Virus record (IMG/VR): IMGVR_UViG_3300021959_006017
Location: 62,001-126,000 of that record
Strand: one strand, 5' to 3'
DNA length: 64,000 nt
Shown: piece by piece, positions 12,151 to 31,718 of the stretch
Position numbering within the stretch: the stretch's first letter is position 1
How the letters are laid out: the number at the start of each line of letters is the position of its first letter
Position numbers and translations under genes: made by a program
The notes under the pieces: generated by a model
Databases searched by the model: none
Seen by the model: only the letters and a program-made list of their open reading frames with translations
What the model was told of the DNA's origin: nothing

Positions 12151-12227
<77 letters not shown>

Positions 12228-12232
12228 ATGCT

Positions 12233-12316
12233 TGGTACCTCCGACCGGACTCGAACCGGTACGCTCATGGCGAGGGATTTTAAGTCCCTTGTGTCTACCA
12301 ATTCCACCACGGAGGC
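12233..12316 (-). tRNA. tRNA-Leu(UAA)
   Basis: GCCTCCG acceptor, CT-TAA-AA loop, long variable arm, encoded CCA. Confidence 0.93.
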
Positions 12317-12324
12317 ATTATGTT

Positions 12325-12401
12325 TGGTGGGCCCTGCGAGACTCGAACTCGCAACCTACGGATTATGAGTCCGGTGCTCTAACCAATTGAGCTAAGAGCC
12401 C
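12325..12401 (-). tRNA. tRNA with CAU anticodon, most likely tRNA-Ile2 (elongator Met not excluded)
   Basis: GGGCTCT acceptor, CT-CAT-AA loop, A73, encoded CCA; resembles ileX-type tRNAs. Confidence 0.88.
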
Positions 12402-12857: not shown

Positions 12858-13163
12858 TTAATAAGCGTGAACTTTTTCTTCGACTTTGATCATCGAAGCT
12901 GGCACCTTGTAGGTGGTGTTGAAGACGCCGTTTGACATGCCACCTTGCACGACCACAGTCTTCTGGTTCACCTTTGTGACCTTCCCAACGACCTTGCCCT
13001 GACGTCCGATGAACGAAACGACATCGCCTTTGGTTACCGAACGGATGCCTTCGCGGGCCAATGCGTTCTGCTTGAGTTTGATAGCATCGTAAATCTCACG
13101 AAGCTCTTCGATATCCTGTAGAGCATAAATGGCCTCTACTGCCTTTGTTACACGATTTGACAT
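12858..13163 (-). CDS. hypothetical protein with SH3/KOW-like C-terminus
   Basis: KGDVVSF...GKVTKVNQKTVVV; start reset to MSNRV. Confidence 0.6.
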   Translation of the reverse strand: MSNRVTKAVEAIYALQDIEELREIYDAIKLKQNALAREGIRSVTKGDVVSFIGRQGKVVGKVTKVNQKTVVVQGGMSNGVFNTTYKVPASMIKVEEKVHAY

Positions 13164-13164
13164 T

Positions 13165-13401
13165 TTAATACTCCTCACCAAAGTCTGCCCATTCTTGTTC
13201 CCACGAGGGTTGACCATCGTCTTCATAGTCCTCCTCGTCTTCGTCTTCGTCGTCCATAAACCGACTGCTCAGCTCGTTGCAGTCTAGCATATCAGCAACG
13301 TCATCCGTGCTCATATACTTCAACGCCATTGTAAGCATATTCTCTGCGCTTACTACGCCGTTCTCTACTAGCTCTAATGCTTCGTCTCTTGCGTTATACA
13401 T
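13165..13401 (-). CDS. acidic hypothetical early protein
   Basis: Own promoter and RBS; ends QPSWEQEWADFGE. Confidence 0.75.
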   Translation of the reverse strand: MYNARDEALELVENGVVSAENMLTMALKYMSTDDVADMLDCNELSSRFMDDEDEDEEDYEDDGQPSWEQEWADFGEEY

Positions 13402-13453
13402 GAAGTTTGCCCTCTTCGTTGTTTCTAACTATACATACACTATAGCAAACGAT

Positions 13454-13630
13454 TTAGGATTTGTCAACCACTTTTTTCAAATATTCTGCAGAAACTGTAA
13501 AGGTCAAGCCTGTGTCGTCGCCGTCGATTGACATGATCTCAAATGAGGCGCATTGACTCTTGAGTGCGTCCTCTACTGCTTCCAACACCAGTTCCATTTG
13601 GTCTACATCTTCAAAGTATTCGGTATCCAT
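13454..13630 (-). CDS. acidic hypothetical protein
   Basis: Start reset to MDTEY, coupled to the upstream stop. Confidence 0.55.
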   Translation of the reverse strand: MDTEYFEDVDQMELVLEAVEDALKSQCASFEIMSIDGDDTGLTFTVSAEYLKKVVDKS

Positions 13631-16472: not shown

Positions 16473-16533
16473 GTTCGCCCTCCAGCGTCTGTGTGTGTTA
16501 TTATGTATACTATACATTCGCTCTACGTAGATG

Positions 16534-16710
16534 TCAACCAAAAAGTAGAACAAATAGTAAAATAAATCCTAGGATGGTTGCAGCATATGTGAAGACATAT
16601 GTTAACGATCCTGCTACCTGCTCGCCAAACGTCACTTCAGTGTTACAGTTGTGACATTTAGTTGCAAAGAACTCTTTGTTGTGGCTCTGGCAATACGGAC
16701 ATAAACTCAT
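16534..16710 (-). CDS. Zn-ribbon plus TM small protein
   Basis: Manual translation MSLCPYC...CHNC, hydrophobic C-terminus; TGA inside a -35 box. Confidence 0.6.
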   Translation of the reverse strand: MSLCPYCQSHNKEFFATKCHNCNTEVTFGEQVAGSLTYVFTYAATILGFILLFVLLFG

Positions 16711-16719
16711 ATCAGCCTC

Positions 16720-16881
16720 CTACAGAAAAAACCAAACGATGAAAGCAAAGCCTACCAACCATGGTGCCAGCTGCCATCCAATACGCAATGCTCCTACGAA
16801 CACTGCACCTACAATACCGATTAGCAAACCTAATACGACTAGGACTGAAATGATGTCCCACATTGTTGTTAACTGATCCAT
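16720..16881 (-). CDS. small membrane protein (53 aa)
   Basis: Manual translation, two hydrophobic helices. Confidence 0.55.
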   Translation of the reverse strand: MDQLTTMWDIISVLVVLGLLIGIVGAVFVGALRIGWQLAPWLVGFAFIVWFFL

Positions 16882-17042
16882 TATCGACGCACCACTTCTA
16901 CTAGTCTACGTGCCCGGCCTGTGTAGGCACTTGCACTCACACCTGCCATCTGACAACCTTTATCCATCGCACTCGACTCTGACAGGGCCATTACGGTTCC
17001 TTGGAACTGTCCGTCATAATAAACAAAATATTGATGAAACAT
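16881..17042 (-). CDS. hypothetical protein (53 aa)
   Basis: Manual translation MFHQYFVYYDG...; own promoter. Confidence 0.55.
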   Translation of the reverse strand: MFHQYFVYYDGQFQGTVMALSESSAMDKGCQMAGVSASAYTGRARRLVEVVRR

Positions 17043-17088
17043 TTTCTTACCCTCGTTTTCTAACTGTTATATACAGTGTACGATCTCT

Positions 17089-17283
17089 TTAGCGTCTTGT
17101 CAACCGATATTTTTCTTTTAAGAAAGAAATATTTTCTTTCACGTACTCACGGAATGAATGCGGCTGAACTTGTCCGAAGCTGTGATACTCGTCTCTGTTC
17201 TCAAAGTACTTGTTCCAACAGAAGCCCGCAAAGGGCTTCTTCTTGTATGGCTTTGGATTATTAACTTCCATTACATGCTCCAA
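17089..17283 (-). CDS. hypothetical protein
   Basis: Coupled ORF. Confidence 0.6.
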   Translation of the reverse strand: MEHVMEVNNPKPYKKKPFAGFCWNKYFENRDEYHSFGQVQPHSFREYVKENISFLKEKYRLTRR

Positions 17284-17600
17284 TAGGCTTCGCTGCTGGG
17301 TGACATATAGTTAGGAGTGTTAACCCCTTCGTACCAAGTCTTTGTGTTGTCCATTAGGCTGGACTTTTTAACCTGCTTCTCAATATGTTTGTGGAAGTAG
17401 CTGGCCTCTGCAATCGCATAACGGAACAGAGCATAGTTCGGATCCGTAGGCAGTAGACCTTCTGCCTTTGCAATGCGTGTAAGACCTGCTTTCGCTGCTG
17501 CCATAGTCTTGTAGCTCTGGCGGTGGTCCGGACGGGCAACACCATTACGATCGGGCTTGCCGATAATGTAAGTGCTGCTCTGTTCGTAAATGTAAAACAT
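17271..17600 (-). CDS. hypothetical early protein (ends NTPNYMSPSSEAYWSM)
   Basis: Own promoter and RBS. Confidence 0.75.
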   Translation of the reverse strand: MFYIYEQSSTYIIGKPDRNGVARPDHRQSYKTMAAAKAGLTRIAKAEGLLPTDPNYALFRYAIAEASYFHKHIEKQVKKSSLMDNTKTWYEGVNTPNYMSPSSEAYWSM

Positions 17601-17658
17601 GGAATGCCCTCCGTTGTTTCTAACTATACTTATAGTGTATGCTCACTCAGAGCATTTG

Positions 17659-17835
17659 TCAACCGAAATCTGTAGCTCGAAGTTCGATTTCTTCTTCTAC
17701 GTCCATCCACAGTTCGTAGACTTTGCTGGTGAGTTTCTTCTTGACACTCTCCTGTAGAGGGAGCTGCATGATGAGCTCATCGACCTCGTCGAGTTTGTTG
17801 TCAAGAGTTTCAAGGATTGATTCTGTGGTTACCAT
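17659..17835 (-). CDS. acidic helical hypothetical protein (58 aa)
   Basis: Manual translation MVTTESILETLDNK...; GGAG RBS; TGA inside a -35 box. Confidence 0.6.
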   Translation of the reverse strand: MVTTESILETLDNKLDEVDELIMQLPLQESVKKKLTSKVYELWMDVEEEIELRATDFG

Positions 17836-17880
17836 TGGGGTCTCCTATTAGCGGGGCCTATTACATTATAACTTTTTGCA

Positions 17881-18048
17881 CTAGCTTTGCCATGCTAGTA
17901 CTTTGTTGTTTTTAACTGTTAGCACACGCATTTCCGTGTAGCCGTCGCGCATAGTAAAAACTGCGCTGTACACAGCCGCGCCGCCGTCTAGCATGTTAAG
18001 CATTTGCAAGTTTGTGTACTTGCCGTTTTTTACTTTTAGTGTTTGCAT
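17881..18048 (-). CDS. hypothetical early protein (55 aa, no Pro)
   Basis: Manual translation MQTLKVKNGKY...; promoter and RBS. Confidence 0.65.
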   Translation of the reverse strand: MQTLKVKNGKYTNLQMLNMLDGGAAVYSAVFTMRDGYTEMRVLTVKNNKVLAWQS

Positions 18049-18119
18049 ATAAAGCCCTCTATGCTGTTAAGTGTTAGTGTGTATAATAGCACACACTAAC
18101 ACATTTGTCAACTACTTTT

Positions 18120-18467
18120 TTAGTTACTTAAACATGCGTAGTCAAGCAAGTTAACGTTTTGCATTGCTGTGTTAGCAACACAATTTTCGTACAAGCTGCT
18201 TTCGTCGTAGTATGTAATGTTGTTTGCAAAAACTTCCATTACAGTGCTAAGTGCTACGTAGTCGTCGCAGTCTGCAAAACTTGCGTAAACTTCCGCTAGT
18301 TGTGCATAAATGTTTGCACTGTTAATAAAGTAGCTTGCACTTGTGCAGTCTGCTTCCATTAGCAGTACGTTGTTAAATGCGTTTGTTAGTACAGCGTATA
18401 CTGTATCCGCATGTACGCTGTCTACGTTTGTTGTTTGTGTTTGTGTAATAGTTTTTAGTGCTTGCAT
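18120..18467 (-). CDS. hypothetical early protein (no Pro)
   Basis: Promoter and RBS. Confidence 0.7.
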   Translation of the reverse strand: MQALKTITQTQTTNVDSVHADTVYAVLTNAFNNVLLMEADCTSASYFINSANIYAQLAEVYASFADCDDYVALSTVMEVFANNITYYDESSLYENCVANTAMQNVNLLDYACLSN

Positions 18468-18537
18468 AACTGCCCTCCGTATGCTTTAGTGTATGTGTAC
18501 ATAATAGCACACATACACACAGTTGTCAAGTGTTTTT

Positions 18538-18783
18538 TTATATGCTGTTTATTAAACTTGTAGCAATTTGCTTTGTGCTTTTGTTTTTGCTGTACAAGTT
18601 GTACAGTGCAGGAAGTAGTTTGTACTGTTGCAGCACTTGTGCGCTTACGTTGCGCTTTACTGCTTGTACTGAGTTTGCACTTACGTTTTGTGCTTTTGTT
18701 TTACTGCAATGCTTAAACATTGTGTTGCTTGTGCTGCAATAAGTTAAAAACACATTACGTGCAAGTTGTTTTGTAGTTAACAT
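18538..18783 (-). CDS. basic hypothetical early protein
   Basis: Promoter and RBS. Confidence 0.65.
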   Translation of the reverse strand: MLTTKQLARNVFLTYCSTSNTMFKHCSKTKAQNVSANSVQAVKRNVSAQVLQQYKLLPALYNLYSKNKSTKQIATSLINSI

Positions 18784-18872
18784 ACGTAGCCCTCGTTTTT
18801 GTTAAACTGTACATACAGTATAACACAAGTTGCACACAATGCAAGCGAAAAATGCACTGTGTGCAAACTTTT

Positions 18873-19142
18873 TTAAACTAGCGGCACTAATATGTCTTTT
18901 ACACTGTCTATAATATTATGTGCGCAGTTGTCAGTAGCAAAGCCCTCCTCCGCTGCAAAGTCAATACTGCTGCTACACATAATAGTGTCTGTAAGCATAT
19001 TAATATTATATTGCGTAAACACTTGTAGTAGCTGCTGTGCTGTTTGCACAGTTGTTGCGACAACAACATTATTTACATGCACAACAATGCATGCGTTTTC
19101 AGCAGTTAAAAATACGTAGTTGTTTGTTTTTGTAGTTTGCAT
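18873..19142 (-). CDS. hypothetical early protein, paralog A (SSxDFAxEEGF motif)
   Basis: Aligns by eye with 19256-19486. Confidence 0.75.
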   Translation of the reverse strand: MQTTKTNNYVFLTAENACIVVHVNNVVVATTVQTAQQLLQVFTQYNINMLTDTIMCSSSIDFAAEEGFATDNCAHNIIDSVKDILVPLV

Positions 19143-19255
19143 ATTAAAGCCCTTATGCTGTTTACGTTATGTATACACTATAGCACACACAGCAGCAACT
19201 GTCAAGCGAAAAATGCACTGTGCGCAAACTTTTTTTAAACGAGACGAAAAGGACG

Positions 19256-19486
19256 CTACAACAGTTGCAGTGCGTCCTCTATTAATGCATGCGCAGCATC
19301 ATCGCTGCTAAAGCCTTCTTCACTTGCAAAGTCTACGTCACTGCTGTGCATTAGCCTGTCTGCTAGTGTAACGTTGTGCTTGCGTAGCAGTGCTGCTAAG
19401 TCTGCTGCACTATTAGCCCAGCCTACTTGCTGTTGTTCAATGCTTACGCTGATGCCCGCTTGTTCTGCGTTAAAAAATACAAACAT
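19256..19486 (-). CDS. hypothetical early protein, paralog B (SSxDFAxEEGF motif)
   Basis: Aligns by eye with 18873-19142. Confidence 0.75.
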   Translation of the reverse strand: MFVFFNAEQAGISVSIEQQQVGWANSAADLAALLRKHNVTLADRLMHSSDVDFASEEGFSSDDAAHALIEDALQLL

Positions 19487-19579
19487 GTTAGCCCTCTTGC
19501 TTTGTTAACTTATACATACACTATACTACACACACTAGCAGTTGTCAACTAAAAAATGCTAGTGTGTGCAAGTTTTTTA

Positions 19580-19843
19580 TTAGCCGTCGTACTTAACGCC
19601 TACCAAACGCAAGTAGCGTCCGTTGTTTGTATTGTGTACTCGCTCACAGCCAGTTACAATCTTAAGCCAAGTGCATTCGCCTTCTGTAAACTTGTCTCCA
19701 AGTATTGCGTAGCACAAGTTGCGTCTGTCTGCAACATCCTCTTTGTTCTTTTGCACAACGTTCGTCCAAGTGCGCCACACACCTGTGTTTTTGCCTTTAA
19801 TCATTGCGTTTAAAATGCTGCGTGTTTGTTTTGTGTTAAGCAT
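19580..19843 (-). CDS. hypothetical early protein
   Basis: Start reset to MLNTKQ (GAGGG RBS). Confidence 0.65.
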   Translation of the reverse strand: MLNTKQTRSILNAMIKGKNTGVWRTWTNVVQKNKEDVADRRNLCYAILGDKFTEGECTWLKIVTGCERVHNTNNGRYLRLVGVKYDG

Positions 19844-20005
19844 GTTTCCCTCATTGCTTGTTACGTTATACATTTAATATAACACAGTTGCACATAAATG
19901 CAAGTGCAACTGTGTATAGTTTAGCTATACTTTAGTATAGCAGCTCTCATAGCAGCGGGGCCAGCTGTAGTGTAGTACTACAGCACCCAGTTGTCAAGTG
20001 TTTTT

Positions 20006-20149
20006 TTAATAATTTTCTGCATCTGCCTCTAAGCAAGTTCCATCTTCGCCTAGCCAAAAGTATTTGTCAAACGCTTTAACAACAACACCTTCAATGTAGT
20101 TGCCTTCTTCCCATTCGCGTTCTTCTGTAGTAATAACTTCAACTTGCAT
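20006..20149 (-). CDS. hypothetical early protein (47 aa)
   Basis: Manual translation MQVEVITTEEREWEEG...; promoter and RBS. Confidence 0.6.
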   Translation of the reverse strand: MQVEVITTEEREWEEGNYIEGVVVKAFDKYFWLGEDGTCLEADAENY

Positions 20150-20243
20150 ATTTGCCCTCATGCTTGTTACGTTTTAGTATGTGTATACTATAGCACAAGC
20201 AGCGCACTTTGTCAAGTACTAAATGCGCTGCTTGCAAATTAAT

Positions 20244-20705
20244 TTATGCGTCCTCAAGCACTATGTTATGTGCTGTAAGCATTTCCTCCGCTATTGCATT
20301 AGCGTCATAGCTCGCACGTCCCACATCCTGCATGCCCCACTCACTAGTGCATACGTCCTCCGCTGCTGCTGTGCTAAAGCCGTGCTGCTGTAGTATGCTG
20401 TGCAGCGTGTCGTCAAAACAATGTTCCCAGTAAAACTGTCCCATTGTTTCCGTGTTGTTGTTAGTGTCACTAGTGTCACGCATTAGCATGCTAGTGTTGT
20501 GTACGTAGTTGCTGTCGTCTTCCGCAGCCCAGTTAACAGCTAAGTCCCCGTAGCAGTCTGCATCCGCATACAGCGTAATGCTTTCCACTTTGCGTCCATT
20601 AACTTGCAAGTTTTGCTGTGCTAAGTTAATTTCCAGCACTACGCTGTTGTCTGCGCTTTCAAGTGTTGTTACTGCTTTAACTTTAGTGTTGTTTACGTTT
20701 TGCAT
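20244..20705 (-). CDS. acidic hypothetical early protein (153 aa, no Pro)
   Basis: Promoter and RBS; SEWGMQ motif. Confidence 0.75.
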   Translation of the reverse strand: MQNVNNTKVKAVTTLESADNSVVLEINLAQQNLQVNGRKVESITLYADADCYGDLAVNWAAEDDSNYVHNTSMLMRDTSDTNNNTETMGQFYWEHCFDDTLHSILQQHGFSTAAAEDVCTSEWGMQDVGRASYDANAIAEEMLTAHNIVLEDA

Positions 20706-20773
20706 TTAAAGCCCTCCAAATGCTTGTTTAAGTATACGTACACTATAGCACAAGTGTACGTATTTGTCAAGTA

Positions 20774-20953
20774 TTATTTTACGTTACAGTATGCTTTGTA
20801 ACTGTTAAACATTTTTTCAATGTTAGCTGCTTTAGTGCAGTTGCCTTGCCTGCTGTCTGCTACTAAACGCATACAGTTTTTTTGCAACTGTGCAAAAGTT
20901 GTTACTTGTTGTTTGTAGTACGCAGGCTTTGCGTTTTGTGCGTTATATGCCAT
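20774..20953 (-). CDS. hypothetical early protein (59 aa)
   Basis: Manual translation MAYNAQNAK...; own promoter. Confidence 0.6.
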   Translation of the reverse strand: MAYNAQNAKPAYYKQQVTTFAQLQKNCMRLVADSRQGNCTKAANIEKMFNSYKAYCNVK

Positions 20954-21033
20954 TTTGTAGTGCCCCCTACTGTTTAACTGTGCATACAGTATAACACAAT
21001 ATGCACAGTTGTCAAGTGTTTTTTTAAATTATT

Positions 21034-21246
21034 TTAGTAGCCCCAGTTGTTGTCTACTACGTCATGCACTTCAATACGTGCGTTCTCGTCTAGTTTAAAA
21101 AACGCATTGTCGTATTCTGCGTAGTCTGCGTTAATAGCTGCTAGTTGCTCTACAGCGTCTTCGTAGCTTGCACACACTGCTGCATTTTCGTATGCATATT
21201 CGTCGTCGCCTGTGCCTTGCAGTTGTAGTATGTTTACTTGTAGCAT
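21034..21246 (-). CDS. acidic hypothetical early protein
   Basis: Start reset to MLQVNIL (GAGGGC RBS). Confidence 0.7.
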   Translation of the reverse strand: MLQVNILQLQGTGDDEYAYENAAVCASYEDAVEQLAAINADYAEYDNAFFKLDENARIEVHDVVDNNWGY

Positions 21247-21337
21247 AGTTTGCCCTCTTTGCTTTATTAACTGTACACACAGTATAACCTCACTTGTGCG
21301 TTCTGTCAAGTTCTTTTTGTTCGCCTGTTCTTTCCGT

Positions 21338-21631
21338 TCACGCAGCACATGCGGCATCCACTCGCTGCCCAAGTGTCTCTACCAGTTCAATCCTCTCATC
21401 GTAGTCTAGTGTAGTCTCAAACGGAACATAACCAACATCACCTAGTCGGCCGCCTAGAGTGTCCACATCAATGGAGATAGTATACCCCTCATACAACATG
21501 TAACCGCCTTGAGGTGATCGTATTTGACCTTTAGCCACTACTACACCTTCTATGTAGTAGTCCTTACCGCCTCTAAAGTCATACGCACGGATACGATCAC
21601 CTACACCTGCTAGATTCTGATATTTCAACAT
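21338..21631 (-). CDS. hypothetical early protein (SH3-like)
   Basis: GDRIRAYDF...YIEGVV; own promoter. Confidence 0.7.
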   Translation of the reverse strand: MLKYQNLAGVGDRIRAYDFRGGKDYYIEGVVVAKGQIRSPQGGYMLYEGYTISIDVDTLGGRLGDVGYVPFETTLDYDERIELVETLGQRVDAACAA

Positions 21632-21699
21632 GTGATTTCCCTCTTGGGTTTGCCCTAACTGTTATATACAGTATATGATCTAATGTAGTACTTGTCAAC

Positions 21700-22410
21700 C
21701 ATTATTTTACAAAAGAACAAAAAGATTTCACTTGGCGTGTTGAACACACAAACTGATCAGAGAGGCGAGAAACCAGAAATCAAATACACTATACACTTCA
21801 AAGACTTATACAGTATAGTAGAACCTAAGTCCACACTAGTGTGGTCCTACCGTAGTAGTAGTGTGAACTTAGTAGTGTAAGCCATTGATCTCTATAGTGT
21901 TAGTAGTGTAGACTATAGTAGTGTAGTAGGGAGAGGCCTTTAGGCCGAATGGTTGAACTTCTTGTGCTAAGTCATTGATCTTTAAGGAGAATAACCACCA
22001 TTTACGAGGGGTTTTAGGGCTATGCTACATGCATAGCAGCGGGGCCTTTGTGGCTAAATGTGGCTTTTCTTCATAGTTTTCAAAGGTTTATATAGGATTT
22101 TTGAACCGTTGCTCGAGGTGACGAGAGGCATAGTTCAAATACTTTTACCAATACTATCAATACGTTAGCTACACTACTTACACTACTACTATAGCCTCTC
22201 TTACTAGTGTAGTAGTAGCCTTAGTGTAGATCAGGATCTCTTCCAAAGCCTGGCTTTACAGTGCTTACTTCTCGTTCTACTATAGTGAAACTTGGATCAG
22301 TCTGAGCCACATACTCGTGTGCTTCTTCATAACTGCTAAGAGTTTCTACTACAGTGCCCTCTGAGTTGATTACATCATATAGTTTAATCATCAAGTATTT
22401 ATTTGGTGTG
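21700..22410. repeat. non-coding region with TAGTAGTGT and AAG(T/C)CATTGATCT repeats; candidate origin or genome terminus
   Basis: tagtagtgt x4 within 21854-21925, inverted forms near 22170-22220, aagccattgatct 21880 and aagtcattgatct 21969. Confidence 0.55.
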
Positions 22411-22561
22411 TGCTTACGTGTTAGCAGCGGGGCCTATTGATGTTCTAGGTATTAGATTTTTAGGATTGGTTGCATAACGCTCTGCTATGTGTTTGTTTGA
22501 AGTTCTCAGTGCGAGATATCCCTTGGGTGTGTACACACTATAGTAGTTGCGATTGTTGATC

Positions 22562-22807
22562 TTATGTGCTTGGATCTTCAACATCTGGTGGGGTTGCATC
22601 CGTTATTTTGAATGGGAATGTAGTCGGGGGAGCTGTGTCTTCGAATGTTCTGTGTACTTCGATGCCATAGGCTTGTGCGCAGGCATCCAGTACGACCCAC
22701 AGTGCTTCGCGGGTGTCATCATCAAACTGTTGTTCCACAGCACTTGCTGCTACATTAAGCACAGTCTCCAGTAGTTCTTCAGGTGTAAACTCAACACTCT
22801 TGGTCAT
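22562..22807 (-). CDS. hypothetical protein
   Basis: Start reset to MTKSVEF. Confidence 0.55.
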   Translation of the reverse strand: MTKSVEFTPEELLETVLNVAASAVEQQFDDDTREALWVVLDACAQAYGIEVHRTFEDTAPPTTFPFKITDATPPDVEDPST

Positions 22808-23081
22808 TCCATAGTACCTCATCCCAGTCCCAGCAGTCATCATAACTCACTGTGAATCGCTGTTGGCTAGCAGTGTCTATCACTTCTAGCATACGTTTGT
22901 TTGTGTCACGACGTGCAATAACTCCTAAACCTTCATACACACCCGGAGTACCTGGATGTGCTTGACCCACTGCAAGATTGTGTGCAGTCACGGGTAGGTT
23001 GTCTTTGAGGAAGGTTACAGTTCTAAAACGTGTTGCCCAACTGGTTCCTTGGGGCAGTTCATCTAGTGTAAGCTGTTTCAT
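22791..23081 (-). CDS. hypothetical protein
   Basis: Start reset to MKQLTL; TAAATA 5 nt upstream. Confidence 0.6.
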   Translation of the reverse strand: MKQLTLDELPQGTSWATRFRTVTFLKDNLPVTAHNLAVGQAHPGTPGVYEGLGVIARRDTNKRMLEVIDTASQQRFTVSYDDCWDWDEVLWNDQEC

Positions 23082-23145
23082 ACTAGTATTTATGAGTGTG
23101 CGGCTTGCGATAAATATTTTTGACTTCGGAAAAAGGAGACTTCCC

Positions 23146-23364
23146 ATGAGTACACTAAGAAACATATCGCTCAACTTGGAGTTGGGCCAAACCATTCTAG
23201 TAGGCAAAAACAGAGAACCCGCAGAAATAACCAAGATCGAATATCATCCTAACTCAGGAGAAATAAGTCTCAATACCACAAGAGGACCACGCAAAGCTCT
23301 TACGTTTTGTTTGGCAGCAGGCGAAGATGATGAGTTCGCAAACCCCGCAGATCGCTATCGCTAG
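23146..23364 (+). CDS. hypothetical protein
   Basis: AGGAG RBS, late motif upstream. Confidence 0.65.
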   Translation: MSTLRNISLNLELGQTILVGKNREPAEITKIEYHPNSGEISLNTTRGPRKALTFCLAAGEDDEFANPADRYR

Positions 23365-23378
23365 TGCTAAATATATAC

Positions 23379-23627
23379 ATGAGAGTAGATGAAGTACTAA
23401 CAGACGAACAAGATATCCTAGACTGGCAGGCCAGTCGAAGCCTTTGTACCAGCAGCAAGCCCGACTCGGCGCTAGGATCCAGCGCACTCGCTTCATGCAA
23501 GAGCCAAGGCTACCGACGTAGGGATGGAAACAAGTCGCACAAAGTAGGCCCTAACAAACGTGTTAAGGTTGGCGGCAAAAAGATCAAGGGTAAGAAATAT
23601 GGCGGACCGCTTCCAGACTGGAGTTAG
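23379..23627 (+). CDS. small basic protein, possible head-internal protein
   Basis: MRVDEV N-terminus, Lys/Gly-rich C-terminus. Confidence 0.6.
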   Translation: MRVDEVLTDEQDILDWQASRSLCTSSKPDSALGSSALASCKSQGYRRRDGNKSHKVGPNKRVKVGGKKIKGKKYGGPLPDWS

Positions 23628-24132
23628 AAAGGGCGACCTATTAGTTGCCACACCCAAGCTGAACAGTTTGCCTTGGAGACGCTCAGTTGTACTTGTTACA
23701 GAAAGCTCTCCCAGGACTGTTATGGGTACTATACTAAACCGTCCTACTATGATGACCACCGAAGATGTTACTGACAGAGCACTAAGGCGCACACAGGTAT
23801 ACATGGGTGGTCCTATATCAACGCAGGCACTTTTCATGCTGCATACCTCAGATTTTACTAGCTCTAACACACTCACAGTGGACAAGCGTTGGGCGATCTC
23901 AAGTGATGATTTTATGTTTGACAAACTGGCAGCAGGCAACGAACCTGCTTGGTATAGATTTTATATGGGTGCTGCAGGATGGCATCCACAGCAGTTAGAA
24001 CATGAAATAGCCCAGGGAGCATGGTTGAGATTAGAAGACCCAAGCTGGGAGTGTGTAACAGGTGATGCAACAGATCAGTGGCAGGCCTGCATAGATACTC
24101 TTAGCCAGAACATGTTCTCAGACTATATCTAA
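23599..24132 (+). CDS. YqgE/AlgH (DUF179) family protein
   Basis: LLVATP, RSVVLV, GTILNRP, YMGGP, YMGAAGWHPQQLEHEI..W. Confidence 0.85.
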   Translation: MADRFQTGVRKGDLLVATPKLNSLPWRRSVVLVTESSPRTVMGTILNRPTMMTTEDVTDRALRRTQVYMGGPISTQALFMLHTSDFTSSNTLTVDKRWAISSDDFMFDKLAAGNEPAWYRFYMGAAGWHPQQLEHEIAQGAWLRLEDPSWECVTGDATDQWQACIDTLSQNMFSDYI

Positions 24133-24160
24133 CTGTTAAGTATACAACCGGAGAACAACT

Positions 24161-24502
24161 ATGTTTAAGAAACTAGCCTTATCTATCGTTGCCGGGCTAG
24201 TTTGCGCAACCAACATAGCCCTAGCAGCAGACCCTTTACCTCTAGCAACTGTACAATGGTGTGAACCAGAGAGCGGCAAGATGTTTGATATGGTACAGAA
24301 CAAGTATGGTGAAATACCATTCATACAAGGAAGTGCAAGTGTGCAAACCACGCAAGGTCCTTGGCTTAAAGGTGACTTTTATATGCTGATCAACCCTGAA
24401 AGCAAGACGTTCAGCATAATACTTGTAGACCCACAGACAGGCCTAGAATGCCTATGGCTAGCAGGAGGCGATGTTGTACCTAGCGTAGGAGATGGCATAT
24501 GA
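24161..24502 (+). CDS. exported hypothetical protein
   Basis: Signal peptide, two Cys. Confidence 0.65.
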   Translation: MFKKLALSIVAGLVCATNIALAADPLPLATVQWCEPESGKMFDMVQNKYGEIPFIQGSASVQTTQGPWLKGDFYMLINPESKTFSIILVDPQTGLECLWLAGGDVVPSVGDGI

Positions 24503-24744
24503 AATGGTTTATATATGTGATTATGATGGGCATGTACTCAGACGGTACGCAAGACACTTATCTCTATACTGAGCCTACACTACCTACACTAGAAGAATGC
24601 CAAGCCTACGTGTACAACAACAGCAGTGTGATTCGTATGGACATGATGACGGAGTTTGATGGCAAACAAGTAGAACGTGTGTTCTGCATAGAAGAAGAAA
24701 AATTCAAACAGTTTTTAGAACAGTCACAAGGAACAGAAGCATGA
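24499..24744 (+). CDS. small exported hypothetical protein
   Basis: Hydrophobic N-terminus, EECQ...FCI; resembles the next ORF. Confidence 0.6.
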   Translation: MKWFIYVIMMGMYSDGTQDTYLYTEPTLPTLEECQAYVYNNSSVIRMDMMTEFDGKQVERVFCIEEEKFKQFLEQSQGTEA

Positions 24745-24929
24745 AATGGATGTTGGTTGTTATAGGTATTATGAATGGTACTCCCGAAGTGTCAAACGAA
24801 GGCGTGTATGAAACTATGTCACACTGCTTCTTTGCAAGAGAAGCAATCATCTGGGATCTATTTATGAACCCAGATGGACAACCACCCACAAACTTCCAAG
24901 TGGTGTGTATACCTACAGATAAATATTAA
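24741..24929 (+). CDS. small exported hypothetical protein
   Basis: MKW N-terminus, SHC...VCIP. Confidence 0.6.
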   Translation: MKWMLVVIGIMNGTPEVSNEGVYETMSHCFFAREAIIWDLFMNPDGQPPTNFQVVCIPTDKY

Positions 24930-24953
24930 TAGCAACACGAAGAGGACGTAACT

Positions 24954-25466
24954 GTGAGCCATACACTATTGCTCAATGCAGACGCACAACCAGTTTCATA
25001 CTTGCCCTTGTCCGCGATTCAGTGGAAAGAATCTATCACATACCTTTGGTTAGATAAAGTTACAGTACTAGAATGGTATGACGATTGGATAGTGCGCAGC
25101 GCCAGTTGGGAAACTAGAGTTCCTGCGGTTATTATGCTCAAAGAAATGCAACGGCGACGGCGCAAGCCTAGATTCTCTAAAACCAATCTATACGTTCGCG
25201 ACGTTTATACCTGCCAATACTGTAACACACCCTACACCCGAAACAACCTTACTCTAGATCATGTCATACCTATTTCCAAAGGTGGCCGCACCAACTGGGA
25301 AAACATTGTAGCCGCTTGTGGCCCTTGTAATACACGCAAAGGAAACAAAACGCATATGAAGCCTATCAAAGCCCCATATGCGCCAGATTATTATGATCTT
25401 GTAAACAAGCGTAAGCAACTAGACATGCACATAGCACACCCTAGTTGGGAAGCCTACCTAGCGTAG
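24954..25466 (+). CDS. HNH endonuclease
   Basis: RDVYTCQYC, TLDHVIPISKGG, WENIVAACGPCNTRKG. Confidence 0.92.
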   Translation: MSHTLLLNADAQPVSYLPLSAIQWKESITYLWLDKVTVLEWYDDWIVRSASWETRVPAVIMLKEMQRRRRKPRFSKTNLYVRDVYTCQYCNTPYTRNNLTLDHVIPISKGGRTNWENIVAACGPCNTRKGNKTHMKPIKAPYAPDYYDLVNKRKQLDMHIAHPSWEAYLA

Positions 25467-25874
25467 CCACCCTATCTTTTTACCTAACTTAGTACGCTTT
25501 TCGTGTTCTGCAACTGTACCTGGAAATCTCCAAGCCCAGATGGCTACCAGCAACATGAAACCACCGCTCCAGGCGACTGCTTTGATATTGCCAGTGGTGA
25601 ACCAAAGGAATGCTAACGAGGACGACATTACTATCACCATCGCATACTTGCCTTTGGTAGGAAATACTCTTTTCTGTACCCAGTTAGTTAGGAATGGGCC
25701 AAAGTATTTGTGATTGTATAACCAATCGTGCATCTTCTTGTTGCTCTTTGCAAAACAATATGCTGCAAACACAAGGAAGATACTAAATGGAATACCCGGA
25801 ACGACTACGCCGATGTATGCCATGCCTAAAGATAGGAAGCCAAGTCCCATCCACACGTATTTTTTAATATTCAT
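25458..25874 (-). CDS. YbaN (DUF454) family membrane protein
   Basis: GVVVPGIP...[23 protein letters not shown]. Confidence 0.85.
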
Positions 25875-27060
25875 TGAATACCTTTCTAAGTGCCTCTACT
25901 AGGTCACTCATCATCGCATCAGTATGTAGAGGTGTAGGAGCGATGCGTAGCCTCTCTGCACCAACATCCACAGTAGGGTAGTTAATGGGTTGGATGTATA
26001 TCCCATATTCGTCTAACAACCGATCACTCATAGCCTTGCACCGCTTCGCTTCGCGAACCATAACTGGTACAATATGAGTGCTGGCTGCATCGTGAACTTC
26101 TATACCTGCTTCGGTTAACATTCTAGTTAGCGTAGCAGCACGTTCTTGATGTTGTATCCTAAGTTCGTTATGATCCTTAAGATACTTGATAGATGCTAGG
26201 GCACCAGCACAAATAACCGGGCTCATGCTGGTAGTGAATATAAATCCACTGGCTACGCTGCGGATTGCGTCTATGACCGTTCCGTCACCGGCAATGTAGC
26301 CACCCTGTACACCATATGCCTTGCCCAGCGTTCCGTTGATTATATCAACACGGCCTTCCCCTATCTTTTCGCAGTAACCTGCGCCAGTTTCACCGTACAA
26401 TCCTACAGCATGTACTTCGTCTATATAGGTCATCGCACCGTAGCGATTAGCAAGGTCGCAGACTTGAGAAATAGGGCTTACGTCACCATCCATGCTATAC
26501 ACAGATTCAAAGACTATGCAGGGTTTAAGTCCTAGGTTAGTAACTTCCTGTAGTTTCTCTTCCAGGCTGCTCATATCATTGTGAAGCCATATACGTTTCT
26601 CTGCGCCACTGTGTCTAATACCCTGGATTAGTGAAGCATGATTCTTTGAATCTGATAGAAAACATATATCAGGTATGATACGTTTAAGTGCAACCAGTGT
26701 CCATTCATTAGCGACATAAGCACTTGTATACAGTAGAGCAGAAGGTTTTGTATGCAGTCGTGCAAGCTCTAACTCTAGTGCAACGTGATAATGGCTAGTG
26801 CCGCCAATATTTCTTGTACCCCCGCTTCCACTTCCTGTTTGGTCGAGGGCTGTGTGCATGGCATCAATAACAACTTTGTTTTGACCCATGCCTAGATAGT
26901 CGTTGCTACACCAGTTGACAATGTTCTTGATGGCATATGGTCCATACCATATACTCTTAGGAAAGTCACCACGCTCACGAAGAATATCGTTAAACACACG
27001 GTACTTGCCTGTTTGTTTAAGATCATCAATAACTTGTTCAAAGGGAGTTTTGTCTATCAT
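25864..27060 (-). CDS. hemA: 5-aminolevulinate synthase (PLP-dependent, C4 pathway)
   Basis: [65 protein letters not shown]. Confidence 0.95.
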
Positions 27061-27098
27061 GTAGTACTTATACGCTAAATAGTGTATAGGAGTTTAAT

Positions 27099-27386
27099 AT
27101 GAGAGCAACAGACATAGTAAGGCAAGTGCTTGATTTACTAGACGCAGTAGAAGGACAACACGATCTAAAGCCTGAAGTTAAGATTGATGTTCAGCAGAAT
27201 GACGAGCCAGACAATCGTTTCAAACAGATACTAGCAATGATGGACGCAGATAGTTTTGGTCCTCTTGCTAACTCACCTAACGAAGTTGTTGCAGACGTGG
27301 ATGCAGTTACTACACTTGCTGGAGGCGGAGTAAATGGTCCAAAGCACGTAGATGATATTAGAGTTAAAGATCCAAGGGGATACTAA
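27099..27386 (+). CDS. hypothetical late protein
   Basis: Late motif and RBS; GGVNGPKH motif. Confidence 0.65.
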   Translation: MRATDIVRQVLDLLDAVEGQHDLKPEVKIDVQQNDEPDNRFKQILAMMDADSFGPLANSPNEVVADVDAVTTLAGGGVNGPKHVDDIRVKDPRGY

Positions 27387-28162
27387 TGGCAGCTAACGGT
27401 ATATCAACACTGGCAAACAAAAAACTAAGACAGATTGCTAAACTGGAACTAGCAGAAGCAGATCGCATTGCTCGCAATGTTGTAGAGCCTGGACGCTATG
27501 CTGTTACTGAATATGAAATAGATGAACTACCTACACAATATGAAACTGACAACAGTGTTACCGATAACGCAAACTCAGCAGGACTGCTTCCAGGAAGACC
27601 TTGGAGTGCAGTAGATATACCTCCAGCAGACGTTGGTAGCCTTACACTTGCTACTGGTGTATATGAAAGAACATACGATGATTACTTTGGACAGTTAGGT
27701 GCAGGACCATATGATGATCAAGCAACATACACCACAATCATCGTAAACGGTGGCGCAACTATCACAGCAGAAGGAGCCACTTCGAGTATCAGCAGAGTAG
27801 GCACTGTTGCTGAAAGTACAAGTTATACAGCATATGGATACTTCCTAGCACCAGCCTCGGGTACATTTACATTCTATATCAATTCAGACGATGCAAGTTA
27901 TTTGTTTGTAGGTGCCGGTGCTGACATTGCCAATAACATTGACCTAGACAATGCTACAGTCGATAATGGCGGCAGACATGGTGTTAACGAAGAAAGTGGA
28001 TCGTTTGATTTGGTAAGCGGAGAGTACTATAAAATATTTGCAGTGTTTGGCAACGACACAGGACCAGGCACAGCAGAGTTTAGTTATGCTGGACCAAGTA
28101 TTGCTAAGACATCAGACTTCACTGGCAGACTGTTCTACAACACAGCAACCAACGGACATTAA
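27386..28162 (+). CDS. virion protein with PA14-like domain
   Basis: YGYFLAPASGTFTFYINSDDASYLFV...GEYYKI PA14 signature. Confidence 0.7.
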   Translation: MAANGISTLANKKLRQIAKLELAEADRIARNVVEPGRYAVTEYEIDELPTQYETDNSVTDNANSAGLLPGRPWSAVDIPPADVGSLTLATGVYERTYDDYFGQLGAGPYDDQATYTTIIVNGGATITAEGATSSISRVGTVAESTSYTAYGYFLAPASGTFTFYINSDDASYLFVGAGADIANNIDLDNATVDNGGRHGVNEESGSFDLVSGEYYKIFAVFGNDTGPGTAEFSYAGPSIAKTSDFTGRLFYNTATNGH

Positions 28163-28165
28163 TAG

Positions 28166-28933
28166 ATGGCAAGTAACGACAAACACATAGACTGGCACAG
28201 TGCTGTCGCACTAGGTAAATCAGGTGGCAACAGTGTTCGCAACATCTTTGGATACAATGCGGCAATACCTGATACCTTTGTTCCAGCCTGGGAAAACGCA
28301 ACTACCTACACTTATCCTACAGTGGCTGAAACAATGACCCTACGCTGGGATACAGCAGACGCAGGCTACACCGTCCTCATCAAAGGGTTGGATGAGAACT
28401 ATGATGAGATACAAGAAACTATCACACTAACTGCTTCACCTGTTACACAGACAACAACTAATCAATACTACAGAATAAATGATTTGGTTACCATAGCAAC
28501 ACCAGGAGGAGCGTTTGGTAATCCAGACAATGACATTACATTAACCAACGCAGGCAACACAGTTACCTATGCTAAGATGTTAGCAGACACGGGCAAGAAT
28601 CAAGCGGCTATATACACCGTGCCAAGAGGCTACCAATATGCTCTCACTCGTATTTCAGCGTTCTGTGCCTCAGCCTCACAAAACAATAGAATTATCACCT
28701 TCCGCAATGTTGCGAGACTAAAGACTGGTGTGATCCTTCGTGTTGCAGAAACAGAGTTCTTAGAGCAGATGATTATTGACAGACAGTTACCGTTTGTGTA
28801 TGATGAATGTACAGACATCGAGTTCCAACTAAAAGGATCAGCAGGCACACAGTTCATTGGTGTGTTCAGCGAAGGCATCCTACACGAGAAAAACAAACAG
28901 AGTCATCTTAATAATCTTGAACTAGGCTTCTAA
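28166..28933 (+). CDS. putative virion structural protein
   Basis: IFGYN, GLDENY, QAAIYTVP motifs; beta-rich. Confidence 0.55.
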   Translation: MASNDKHIDWHSAVALGKSGGNSVRNIFGYNAAIPDTFVPAWENATTYTYPTVAETMTLRWDTADAGYTVLIKGLDENYDEIQETITLTASPVTQTTTNQYYRINDLVTIATPGGAFGNPDNDITLTNAGNTVTYAKMLADTGKNQAAIYTVPRGYQYALTRISAFCASASQNNRIITFRNVARLKTGVILRVAETEFLEQMIIDRQLPFVYDECTDIEFQLKGSAGTQFIGVFSEGILHEKNKQSHLNNLELGF

Positions 28934-29033
28934 AGATTAACCCCCCGCCTAGTGGAACTAAACGAGGGGCTGCTTCTAAATGTACTTATTATTAAGGGCT
29001 ATGCCCCGTAAATCTTAGTTTACTTTTATACTA

Positions 29034-29354
29034 TTATTTATTAGTCTTGCCGTTTACAAAATCGTAAAACTTATCAGCAGCTTCTAATACAGCATCAACC
29101 CCTGGTACTTCAGGCATTGAAACAGTTGTAACTACTTCACCAGATTCAGGATCACGCTTTACAGTTTGTTCCCAACCTGCAAACTTAGCATGAAAATCAC
29201 TCCAGACATTGTCTTTGGCCATTTCTAAAACTTGTGTGCGGATTTCGTAACCGTTCTTATTCATTGTTACTTTAGGCATTGCTTGCTTGAACATGTCTGC
29301 AAGCTCTTGCGTTTGCTTGAGGATAGTTTCCCCGTACTTTGTTTCTACGCTCAT
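29034..29354 (-). CDS. hypothetical protein
   Basis: GGAG RBS; NKNGYEIRT motif. Confidence 0.7.
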   Translation of the reverse strand: MSVETKYGETILKQTQELADMFKQAMPKVTMNKNGYEIRTQVLEMAKDNVWSDFHAKFAGWEQTVKRDPESGEVVTTVSMPEVPGVDAVLEAADKFYDFVNGKTNK

Positions 29355-29430
29355 AATATTCTCCTTGTGTGTATGTGTGTAGTGTTACTTTAATGTAACT
29401 TTATTAATGTAACAGAGTATTTAGTGTTTG

Positions 29431-29616
29431 TCAACCACTAACGTAGTTCTTTTTTGGTCTGTACCAAACTTTCTGATGATGTAGCTTTGCACGAACATTT
29501 TGTATTTCACGCTTGTCTGCTTCGTCAGCATTTGTTTGGAGTAGAAATAGAGCCCGATCAATGAGCTCTATATCTTTTACGTTTAGATTGAATCTTGTGT
29601 TAGGCTTATTTGCCAT
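29431..29616 (-). CDS. hypothetical protein
   Basis: ORF in a leftward cluster. Confidence 0.55.
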   Translation of the reverse strand: MANKPNTRFNLNVKDIELIDRALFLLQTNADEADKREIQNVRAKLHHQKVWYRPKKNYVSG

Positions 29617-29757
29617 TAATGATATCCATCTCTTCGTCCGTGTAAGGCCACATATTATAATGCTCCTGCGTAGTGCAGTCCATTAAGAGTTAAAAAGCCT
29701 GCTAAGAATGCCATCATACCTAAAAAGATAAAAGTTGTTTTTACTAGTTCTTTCCAA

Positions 29758-29976
29758 CTATACATTTTCTTTTTCCTTTTTTAACATAAGTGCTTTAGCT
29801 TCGTCCATTCTACCCATTCTTGCAAGTTCTGAAGCAGCTCTTGCTCTACCAGCTGATTCACCTAAGGCAATCATTCCAATAAACATTGCAAATAAACCTT
29901 TGCCGATTGCTTTGAAGATTGTTGGAAGTGGATTTTGAAAAGTGGGTTGTCTAAATGCTACAGCCATTACACCCAC
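29758..29976 (-). CDS. small hypothetical protein
   Basis: Coupled to the DUF1127 gene. Confidence 0.6.
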   Translation of the reverse strand: MGVMAVAFRQPTFQNPLPTIFKAIGKGLFAMFIGMIALGESAGRARAASELARMGRMDEAKALMLKKEKENV

Positions 29977-30206
29977 CCCTTAAGGTTTGGGTTAGTTTCT
30001 CTGTGAAACGTACCTCTTGCTATAGAGCCGATGTCTGAACGACCAATCCCTAGGTCGTGTAGTTCTCTATCTGATAGTCTAGATAGTTCTTTGATTGTTT
30101 GACGCTCTAGTGCCTTTTGGGCTCTTGTGCGTTTCCAATCGCGGATTAGGTCCGCTAGTCCATCAAAGTTTAGCCATTGTGCGGCTGTTAAGATCGCTTG
30201 TGTCAT
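29967..30206 (-). CDS. DUF1127 (YjiS-like) small protein
   Basis: R..RQTIKELSRLSDRELHDLGIGRSDI signature; start reset to MTQAI. Confidence 0.88.
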   Translation of the reverse strand: MTQAILTAAQWLNFDGLADLIRDWKRTRAQKALERQTIKELSRLSDRELHDLGIGRSDIGSIARGTFHRETNPNLKGWV

Positions 30207-30382
30207 TATTGATATACTCCCATTCTCGGTCCTTGACCTTTGTTCTTTAGCATGTAGTGAAAGGCATATTCCCAATCATTAGCATACTCTGTCTTAGCGT
30301 ATGTGAGCATATCAGCTTCGCAGGCCCTAGAGCCTTTGCGTCCAAACATACTCACAAGGCTCTTGAATAGCTTACTAGCCAT
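30206..30382 (-). CDS. small hypothetical protein
   Basis: Start reset to MASKL (GGAG RBS). Confidence 0.6.
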   Translation of the reverse strand: MASKLFKSLVSMFGRKGSRACEADMLTYAKTEYANDWEYAFHYMLKNKGQGPRMGVYQ

Positions 30383-31713: not shown

Positions 31714-31718
31714 AACAG

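Follow-up and report, generated by a model that had tools for sequence, protein, structure and literature searches.

A conserved, strand-specific motif of an early region in uncultured marine jumbo phages, placed beside an origin-like non-coding hub and at downstream ends of genes that avoid TC and CC

A repeated motif at the edge of a compositionally depleted block

We asked whether a short GC-rich motif, repeated in the early region of an uncultured phage, is a genuine signal, and what it might signal. The sequence analysed (the window) is a 64,000-nucleotide stretch, positions 62,001 to 126,000, of the IMG/VR record IMGVR_UViG_3300021959_006017. A first-pass annotation made from the sequence alone had described four copies in the same orientation, all intergenic except the one at 22426, spaced by 2104, 2084 and 388 bp, the first at the left boundary of a block lacking the dinucleotides GA and GG. 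From an analogy with phage T5 it had inferred a nick, injection-pause, packaging or modification-boundary signal. The observation holds, whereas the interpretation is only partly supported.

The 9-mer AGCGGGGCC has exactly four matches in the window, at 17850, 19954, 22038 and 22426, all on the + strand, whereas 0.09 are expected. Three copies carry the 13-mer TAGCAGCGGGGCC and the fourth has two mismatches. A motif count over the whole contig, proposed beforehand as a check, revealed no further copy on either strand of its 236,751 bp, and all four copies lie inside 4.6 kb. The local genes run on the minus strand, on which the element reads (W)A-GGCCCCGCTG-Y(W)A, lies between genes, and points the same way as a cluster of early genes driven by near-consensus sigma-70 promoters. 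ORF 22414-22599, in which the fourth copy had been placed, has no homologue in any relative and overlaps the end of ORF 22562-22843, so it is probably spurious. All four copies are intergenic with respect to the minus-strand genes.

The block free of GA/GG on the + strand, or of TC/CC on the coding strand, spans 17859-21420. It contains 18 GA/GG dinucleotides against 289 expected from its own base composition, and no other stretch of the contig is comparable. It holds about 11 small ORFan cassettes on the minus strand, most of them with a near-consensus sigma-70 promoter. The promoters of the region match 10-11 of 12 consensus positions. The encoded proteins have almost no proline, and serine uses AGY codons only. 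The last GG before the block is the G-run of the copy at 17850. The copy at 19954 holds the only run of three or more G in the block, although five GG pairs exist elsewhere in it. The sequence is not an assembly artefact, as exact contigs from four independent metagenome runs cover 17850 and 19954, exact contigs from at least one run each cover 22038 and 22426, and sixteen or more runs hold at least half of the stretch.

Position of the four copies and organisation of the hub

Copy 1 (17846-17858, minus strand) reads GGCCCCGCTAATA on the minus strand, a variant form. It lies 22 nt after the stop of the last TC/CC-free ORF and 10 nt before the ATG of ORF 17659-17835, and is the exact 3' edge of the block. 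Copy 2 (19950-19962, minus strand; GGCCCCGCTGCTA) is located inside the block, starts 6 nt after the -10 hexamer of the promoter TTGACA-17-TACACT, and lies in the 80-nt leader of ORF 19580-19873. Copy 3 (22034-22046, minus strand) is in the non-coding hub, about 70 nt downstream of a second conserved non-coding box that we named CE33. Copy 4 (22422-22434, minus strand) lies between the stop of ORF 22562-22843 and the ATG at 22391 of ORF 22221-22391, about 290 nt upstream of CE33.

CE33 (22114-22147, minus strand) is 91-100% identical in 12 relatives, is a syntenic partner of the motif, and has no conserved RNA fold. A DnaA-box-like 9-mer with one mismatch (TTAGCCACA; 22049-22057, minus strand) lies 85-86 nt from the CE33 start, as in the related loci L003, L022 and L024, and 2 nt upstream of copy 3. 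Short repeats of the TAGTAGTGTAG type at 21847-21930, together with inverted partners at 22169-22229 (26-nt arms, 9 nt apart), flank CE33 and copy 3. The hub lies close to the position, at about 23.1 kb, where gene orientation switches.

Conservation in related phages

The motif is conserved in related IMG/VR loci, with 128 distinct copies in 52 loci, always in the same orientation as the early genes. Conservation stops sharply outside positions -3 to +12, and the core is identical in phages whose neighbouring proteins are only 67-84% identical, while the flanking sequence cannot be aligned. Two to five copies per genome are confined to this region, and in the whole records of relatives, including a complete 357,559-bp genome, the copies occur only in this cluster. 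They flank CE33 and, in some relatives, paired DnaA boxes and dif-like sites. Of 124 instances, 38 lie 0-80 nt after the stop of a co-oriented ORF, nine lie 5-40 nt before a strong promoter, and 50 have another copy within 150 nt. Tandem spacing has a mode of 40-44 bp but ranges from 13 to 53 bp. One variant copy (5815 in locus L037) lies at a convergent junction. The 2.1-kb spacing seen in the window is not conserved. In a test that does not depend on the motif search, 16 of 19 CE33 boxes have a motif within 400 nt upstream. The arrays lie next to CE33, an A/T tract and a DnaA-like box, with distal copies outside the hub. In four relatives (L001, L005, L021 and L041) the array lies 0.5-0.9 kb from DnaA boxes, mostly in pairs 2-3 bp apart, and paired perfect DnaA boxes and paired dif-like sites occur in L001, L021 and L041. 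The window itself lacks such DnaA and dif clusters and has only single DnaA-like boxes with one mismatch.

The link between motif and block extends to relatives. In six loci the motif is the first TC/CC-containing sequence at the 3' (downstream) edge of a block. It is at the 3' edge of, or is the sole interruption in, 8 of 22 TC/CC-free blocks, and is at none of the 5' edges. It is enriched at transitions from free to normal sequence (6), absent at normal-to-free transitions (0 of about 20), and rare at free-to-free junctions. The block is kept by selection in relatives. Eight diverged homologues (69-89% nucleotide identity, 9-26 synonymous differences per pair) each keep 0-2 TC/CC. Within this purged sequence, the CCCC of the motif is retained.

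Origin of the depleted block

The same eight homologues, and the fact that G content is not lowered, reject APOBEC-like hypermutation as the origin of the block. Avoidance of UV (6-4) photoproducts is rejected because the purged strand is the non-template strand. A 7-deazaguanine modification in a GA/GGC context, and with it a modification boundary of this type, is not supported: profile searches found no TGT/DpdA (PF01702) match in six records, including a complete genome, and no QueC (PF06508) match in the five relatives among them, the window's own contig being outside this second search. A guanine "hole-sink" role for the GGGG run is unlikely, because the non-G part of the motif is equally conserved and the copies lie kilobases apart.

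Comparison with known elements

We compared the motif with known cis-acting elements. The ops element, which recruits RfaH, is a linear, orientation-dependent element of about 12 nt found in leaders and between genes of operons carrying foreign-like genes, and its function is tied to escape from Rho. The motif is likewise co-oriented with transcription in all true instances, mostly intergenic, and at variable distance downstream of promoters. However, the sequences are unrelated (GGCGGTAGNNTG for ops against GGCCCCGCTGYWA), with only 4-5 of 12 positions in agreement, tandem arrays occur here, and many copies sit after stop codons or before non-coding DNA. No NusG paralogue and no NusG N-terminal (NGN) domain was found in the contig, which is only 67% complete. 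Like the boxA/nut antitermination sites of rrn operons and lambdoid phages, the motif is a short unstructured box, repeated in early phage transcripts at the heads of transcription units, but it does not match the boxA consensus, occurs in multi-copy arrays, and has no adjacent conserved boxB-like hairpin, its pairing partners being scattered. It is not an intrinsic terminator, since the position matrix shows no T-run and no conserved 3' arm, and only two instances (3260 in L013 and 6389 in L003) complete a hairpin. It is not a fixed-distance promoter or start-site element either, as there is no positional signal upstream of -3 and distances to promoters vary in both directions. Only four block-associated copies start 4-6 nt after a -10 hexamer. 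Nor does it resemble a CRISPR repeat or solitary repeat unit of 28-37 nt, as conservation covers only about 14 nt without a conserved hairpin.

A promoter for a phage-encoded polymerase or sigma factor is also not indicated. Searches of the phage records G000-G003 gave no match to PF00940 (T7-like RNA polymerase) or PF04542 (sigma-70 region 2). The PF00940 search is uninformative, since it also found nothing in any control genome, and divergent multisubunit polymerases were outside the scope of both.

The T5 injection-stop region of the first-step-transfer DNA is a large untranslated region full of direct and inverted repeats, with paired DnaA boxes, beside strongly promoted early genes. The hub and the DnaA-box clusters of the four relatives are reminiscent of this arrangement, which lends the T5 analogy indirect support. 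On the other hand, no terminal repeat or two-step transfer is known for this clade, T5 is not known to have an equivalent GC-rich motif, and the relatives also add dif-like sites. The arrays of small ORFan early genes, many with a strong sigma-70 promoter, some overlapped by a stem-loop, recall the PeSL (promoter-early stem-loop) cassettes of T4-type phages, and metagenome contigs show the cassettes being shuffled at promoter sequences. PeSL is the promoter module itself, whereas the motif is a separate element found at only a few junctions and in the hub. Finally, Chi and other polar chromosomal motifs are short, orientation-specific signposts for one-directional processes, Chi being a host-specific 5-8-mer that is over-represented and skewed in the host genome and oriented towards a DNA end, and the + strand reading of the motif contains AGCGG, the Bacillus Chi. 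The motif is longer than the known Chi sites (5-8 nt), and there is no evidence that a DNA end lies nearby.

A possible punctuation signal for early transcription

Taken together, the 9-mer is the core of a 12-14-nt, unstructured, strand-specific recognition sequence belonging to the early region of a clade of estuarine/marine jumbo phages. We propose that it is bound by a conserved trans-acting factor, either a host protein or a core phage protein, and that it acts as a direction-specific punctuation signal for transcription units of the host RNA polymerase, the likely reader given the searches above. Copies placed just after stop codons, often in tandem, would insulate the origin-like hub from incoming transcription, and single copies would close the TC/CC-free immediate-early cassettes or reprogramme transcription as it leaves them. 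Our analysis demonstrates the conservation, the orientation, the intergenic placement, and the linkage to the hub and to the 3' edges of blocks. That the element acts on transcription, that it needs a factor, and that it leans towards "stop/insulate" rather than "go" are inferences from sequence alone, as would be any role in nicking, injection pausing or packaging. This reading is therefore tentative (probability about 0.35). In the absence of a hairpin or U-tract it requires a factor, so far unidentified, and a stop signal would be odd in the four block-associated copies that lie roughly at the predicted start site.

The tandem spacing of about 40-44 bp, like the neighbourhood of DnaA boxes, dif-like sites and short repeats, fits a double-stranded-DNA binding site at least as well. 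The motif might thus be a site for a protein of an origin-like or injection-stop-like hub (an iteron, a DNA-entry pause site or a loop anchor), the distal copies being secondary and the shared orientation reflecting a one-directional DNA process or common descent. The linkage to CE33, the fixed position of the DnaA-like box and the switch in gene orientation agree with this possibility. However, copies on both sides of CE33 and copies kilobases away all share one orientation, which is not expected around an origin, and the distal copies track cassette junctions and block edges. This reading remains possible but less likely. Slightly less likely again is a leader-type loading site working like ops or boxA, read in the nascent RNA or on the non-template strand, that would make the elongation complex or the RNA resistant to whatever factor reads TC/CC where transcription enters ordinary sequence. 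YC is the dinucleotide bound by the primary RNA-binding site of Rho, and the copy at 17850 sits immediately before the first TC/CC-containing gene. Yet, besides the mismatch with ops and boxA and the fact that no NusG paralogue was found in the incomplete contig, the arrays are followed by about 1 kb of non-coding hub or by a convergent gene rather than by genes that would need protecting, and the copy at 19954 precedes TC/CC-free genes.

A T5-like single-strand nick site, a terminase cut or a terminal-repeat boundary is unlikely. The motif is strand-specific, rare and GC-rich at the edge of an early block, which speaks for such a site by analogy with T5, and contig depth is somewhat higher inside the block, although strain mixtures confound this. 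Assembled contigs, which do not show read ends, provide no direct evidence for it, no contig of the clade has terminal repeats, and tandem arrays of 2-5 copies are not expected for a single cut site. A genome end close to the motif is rejected, as the contig ends of the complete relative map to about 27-29 kb of the window, a stretch that is contiguous here. A chance or selfish mini-repeat without function is very unlikely given the excess over expectation, the identical core and the retained CCCC, even though the copies lie in a region of shuffled cassettes and any function is inferred. Overall, strict co-orientation with transcription and placement at cassette junctions favour a transcription-linked role.

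A more speculative and rather improbable possibility is that motif and blocks are two halves of one undescribed strategy. Immediate-early cassettes would be written without the dinucleotide read by a host factor, which could be the primary RNA-binding site of Rho, or a YC-specific nuclease or deaminase acting on the RNA or on the non-template strand. The CCCC-containing motif would then be the only licensed site where that factor, or a counter-factor, engages, marking where intrinsic immunity ends and factor-dependent control begins.

Early regions of uncultured jumbo phages are mostly unreadable ORFans, and a rare, perfectly conserved, oriented signal gives a handle on their organisation. It is tied to early genes that have purged two dinucleotides under selection, at the cost of proline and most serine codons, which points to a strong host pressure, not described so far, on the first phage transcripts or on the first DNA exposed in the cell. 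If the motif is the punctuation of that system, both the identity of the factor that reads TC/CC and the switch from immediate-early to delayed-early expression would become experimentally accessible. The linked hub, with host-type DnaA boxes and dif sites in relatives, also suggests that lytic phages borrow cis-elements of the host chromosome.

Database and literature searches

Literature searches for the motif, and for strand-specific dinucleotide avoidance in phage early genes, found nothing relevant. Megablast of 17000-23000 and tblastn of a block ORF against isolate phages found nothing. The closest isolates are PA5oct-like phages, at about 50% amino-acid identity. There is no motif, CE33 or block in the 40.7-kb PA5oct stretch examined, and Vibrio phage 2.275.O, searched for the motif only, has no copy in its whole 348,911-bp record. 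Rfam gave no credible family in 16500-24500. Pfam and PHROGs gave nothing for the block ORFs, and Pfam gave nothing for the flanking small ORFs. A confident predicted model of the 89-aa family (pLDDT 86.7) matched only generic folds, with Z of 6.1 or less and Foldseek E of 0.25 or more, and the protein atlas gave nothing. The scan for tandem motif pairs also returned collagen-like coding repeats (GGCCCCGCTGGCCC), which are unrelated and were filtered out.

Occurrence and local context of the motif

The sequence AGCGGGGCC matches four times in the window, at 17850, 19954, 22038 and 22426, all on the + strand, against 0.09 matches in shuffled sequence. Three of the copies share the 13-mer TAGCAGCGGGGCC. 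The window corresponds to bases 62001-126000 of a single 236,751-bp IMG/VR contig (39% G+C), rated 67% complete by CheckV, and the 9-mer occurs nowhere else on either strand of that contig. The stretch is not an assembly artefact. At least 16 estuarine or marine metagenome runs hold half or more of it, and in four independent runs contigs with no differences cover 17850 and 19954, while the copies at 22038 and 22426 are each covered by such a contig in at least one run. The repeated motif reported by the first-pass annotation is thus confirmed.

Genes between about 8.5 kb and 23.1 kb run on the minus strand, on which the motif reads GGCCCCGCTGCTA, except for the copy at 17850, which reads GGCCCCGCTAATA. 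The minus-strand genes between 17.1 kb and 21.7 kb are small ORFan cassettes, most of which are preceded by a near-consensus sigma-70 promoter (TTGACA, 17 nt, then TATAGT, TATACT or TATTAT, matching 10-11 of 12 positions). Some of these promoters overlap a stem-loop, as in the early cassettes of T4-type phages. Between 17000 and 22000, metagenome contigs join different cassettes at promoter sequences, for example 17634 to 21010 and 20197 to 21006, which indicates strain-level cassette shuffling like that of the PeSL regions in T4-type phages. All four motif copies are intergenic. The copy at 22426 lies between ORF 22562-22843 and the ATG at 22391, and the copy at 22038 lies in a non-coding stretch. 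The copy at 19954 starts 6 nt after the -10 hexamer of a promoter and heads an 80-nt leader, whereas the copy at 17850 lies 22 nt after the stop of the last block ORF and 10 nt before the next ATG. ORF 22414-22599, which the first-pass annotation had considered doubtful, has no homologue in any relative.

An early-gene block depleted in TC and CC

Positions 17859-21420 contain 18 GA/GG dinucleotides on the + strand, where base composition predicts 289 and the genome-wide frequency predicts 378, and no other part of the contig comes close. On the coding strand this amounts to an absence of TC and CC. G and C contents are almost normal, AC and GC are enriched, the encoded proteins have 0.6% proline, and serine is encoded by AGY codons only. 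The block is therefore not a recent deamination event. Early-gene cassettes with essentially no TC or CC on the coding strand were also observed in the related IMG/VR loci L001, L010, L013, L022, L024, L031, L037, L046 and others. In an 89-aa gene family with eight diverged members (69-89% nucleotide identity, 9-26 synonymous differences per pair), every member keeps 0-2 TC/CC where about 20 would be expected, and the avoidance is therefore kept by selection. It follows the gene and not the genome strand, as a homologue that is inverted in L037 and L010 is purged on its own coding strand.

Locus L024 contains a 172-aa ORF (13030-13548) with no TC, CC, GA or GG on either strand, whose product therefore has no Asp, Glu, Gly or Pro. 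This ORF has no Shine-Dalgarno sequence and its -35 hexamer reads TTTACA instead of TTGACA, which hints at a reader acting on DNA. Candidates for the factor that would read TC/CC are the primary RNA-binding site of Rho, which binds YC, a YC-specific endoribonuclease, or a single-stranded-DNA deaminase or nuclease acting on the non-template strand. Phage-encoded 7-deazaguanine modification is not supported.

Conservation of the motif in related phages

We searched IMG/VR with two proteins, the neighbouring AAA ATPase, which is probably a clamp-loader subunit given its matches to many T4-like phages, and a block ORF, and obtained 47 related loci. About half of these loci reach the early region, and they carry GGCCCCGC on the same strand as the genes, usually as 2-5 copies. 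A scan for tandem pairs added more contigs and, once collagen-like coding repeats were removed, 128 distinct instances remained in 52 loci. Copies in different loci are partly related by descent, so that these counts and those below are not independent events. The 10-mer GGCCCCGCTG also occurs in unrelated phages, in viral-contig loci such as L054, L057, L122 and L163, inside collagen-like or other tandem coding repeats with periods of 9-45 nt, which are false positives for any simple motif scan.

Information content is high only from -1 to +9 (A, GGCCCCGC, TG), moderate at -3/-2 and +10 to +12, and nil beyond. In the whole records of relatives, one of which is a complete 357,559-bp genome, the motif is confined to this cluster. 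The single reverse 8-mer in that genome lies in a Gly/Ala-rich coding sequence, lacks the 3' half of the motif, and is a chance match. More distant phages lack the motif, with no copy in the whole record of Vibrio phage 2.275.O and none in the 40.7-kb stretch of PA5oct that was examined. PA5oct (NC_071039), the closest isolate, has at 16992-17610 an RNA-seq-annotated long non-coding RNA, in a roughly 1.8-kb non-coding region upstream of its ATPase homologue. The position is analogous to that of the non-coding hub described below, but there is no sequence similarity.

Conserved elements and block edges associated with the motif

A second conserved non-coding box, CE33, lies on the minus strand at 22114-22147 of the window and is 91-100% identical in 12 relatives. 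Sixteen of 19 CE33 boxes have a motif within 400 nt upstream, and seven also have one downstream. In the window and 12+ relatives, CE33 has short upstream direct repeats of its 5' part and a downstream A/T tract, no conserved RNA fold, and no match to any promoter consensus that we could recognise. A DnaA-box-like 9-mer lies 85-86 nt from CE33 in the window and in three relatives, and TAGTAGTGTAG-type repeats in both orientations flank the pair. In four relatives, clusters of perfect DnaA boxes, mostly in pairs 2-3 bp apart, lie 0.5-0.9 kb downstream of the motif array (L001, 3290-3700; L005, 2730-2840; L021, 3480-3650; L041, 760-1050 and 1931-1951, these ranges including the dif-like sites). 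Paired dif-like XerCD sites accompany the boxes in three of these apparently lytic jumbo phages. L001 and L021 each carry a site one mismatch from the 28-bp E. coli dif, beside a weaker second copy, and L041 has two weaker copies, with 3 and 6 mismatches. The window lacks these clusters. The hub therefore looks like a replication origin, or like the DnaA-box-bearing injection-stop region described for T5.

The motif is also associated with the edges of the depleted blocks. Of 22 TC/CC-free blocks in the loci, eight have the motif as the first TC/CC-dense sequence on the 3' side. Six of these are true edges (window 17850, L010 5689, L022 5490, L024 9547, L031 1859 and L046 11054) and two are internal copies (window 19954 and L037 5373). 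A third internal copy, L007 1153, registered in that count on the 5' side of its block's midpoint. No true 5' edge has a motif nearby. L010 and L046 use the variant GACCCCGCTGCTA. The interpretation offered by the first-pass annotation is thus supported in part, as the proposed marking of the block edge is real and polar, whereas the spacing of about 2.1 kb varies from 2.1 to 7 kb among relatives.

Position relative to transcription signals

There is no fixed distance between the motif and a -10 hexamer. Of 124 instances, 38 lie 0-80 nt after the stop codon of a co-oriented ORF, nine lie 5-40 nt upstream of a strong promoter, and 50 have another copy within 150 nt, with a modal spacing of 40-44 bp. 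Four block-associated copies begin 4-6 nt after a -10 hexamer, roughly at the predicted start site, and one variant copy lies at a convergent junction. There is no conserved hairpin or T-run. The phage records show no T7-like RNA polymerase or sigma-70 region 2, and the incomplete contig shows no NusG domain, although the T7-like RNA polymerase model also found nothing in any control genome, so that this negative result carries little weight. The promoters, Shine-Dalgarno sequences, DnaA boxes and dif sites suggest that the host is a gamma-proteobacterium.

Possible roles of the motif

The element is a specific recognition sequence, being too conserved, too rare and too sharply bounded to be anything else, and it keeps CCCC inside sequence from which TC/CC is otherwise purged. 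By sequence and structure it does not belong with ops sites, boxA/nut sites, intrinsic terminators, sigma-70 promoter or start-site elements, or CRISPR repeats. Its strict co-orientation with transcription, its placement at cassette junctions, its location just after stop codons, its tandem copies and its polar association with block ends fit best with a factor-dependent, polar punctuation signal for early transcription units. While the conservation, orientation and placement of the motif were observed directly, its action on transcription and its need for a factor are inferred from assembled sequence alone, and it is on position alone that this reading leans towards stop or insulate. We hold it tentatively, with a probability of about 0.35.

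Other roles may be considered. A double-stranded-DNA site of the origin- or injection-stop-like hub is a somewhat less likely possibility, as it fits the arrays and their neighbours but accounts less well for the shared orientation and for the junction-tracking of the distal copies. A leader-type antitermination or protection site working like ops or boxA, which we consider less likely still, fits the transitions from free to normal sequence but does not fit the arrays that precede non-coding DNA. Nick sites, which the first-pass annotation had suggested in part by analogy with the single-strand nicks of T5, or terminase sites remain a remote and purely conjectural possibility.

Other genes in the window

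A cluster of three tRNA genes, Arg-TCT, Leu-TAA and Met-CAT, lies on the minus strand at 12151-12401. Auxiliary genes next to the early region, at 23560-35893 and 59476-60618, encode an AlgH-like protein, an HNH endonuclease, a class I/II aminotransferase, a PA14/GLEYA protein, a UDP-glucose dehydrogenase-like protein, a class-3 lipase and an IMPDH/GMP-reductase-like protein. Finally, the gene at 42708-44318 encodes a protein with an Mtd_N domain (N-terminus of the major tropism determinant) and a pectate-lyase-like domain, which may be a receptor-binding protein.
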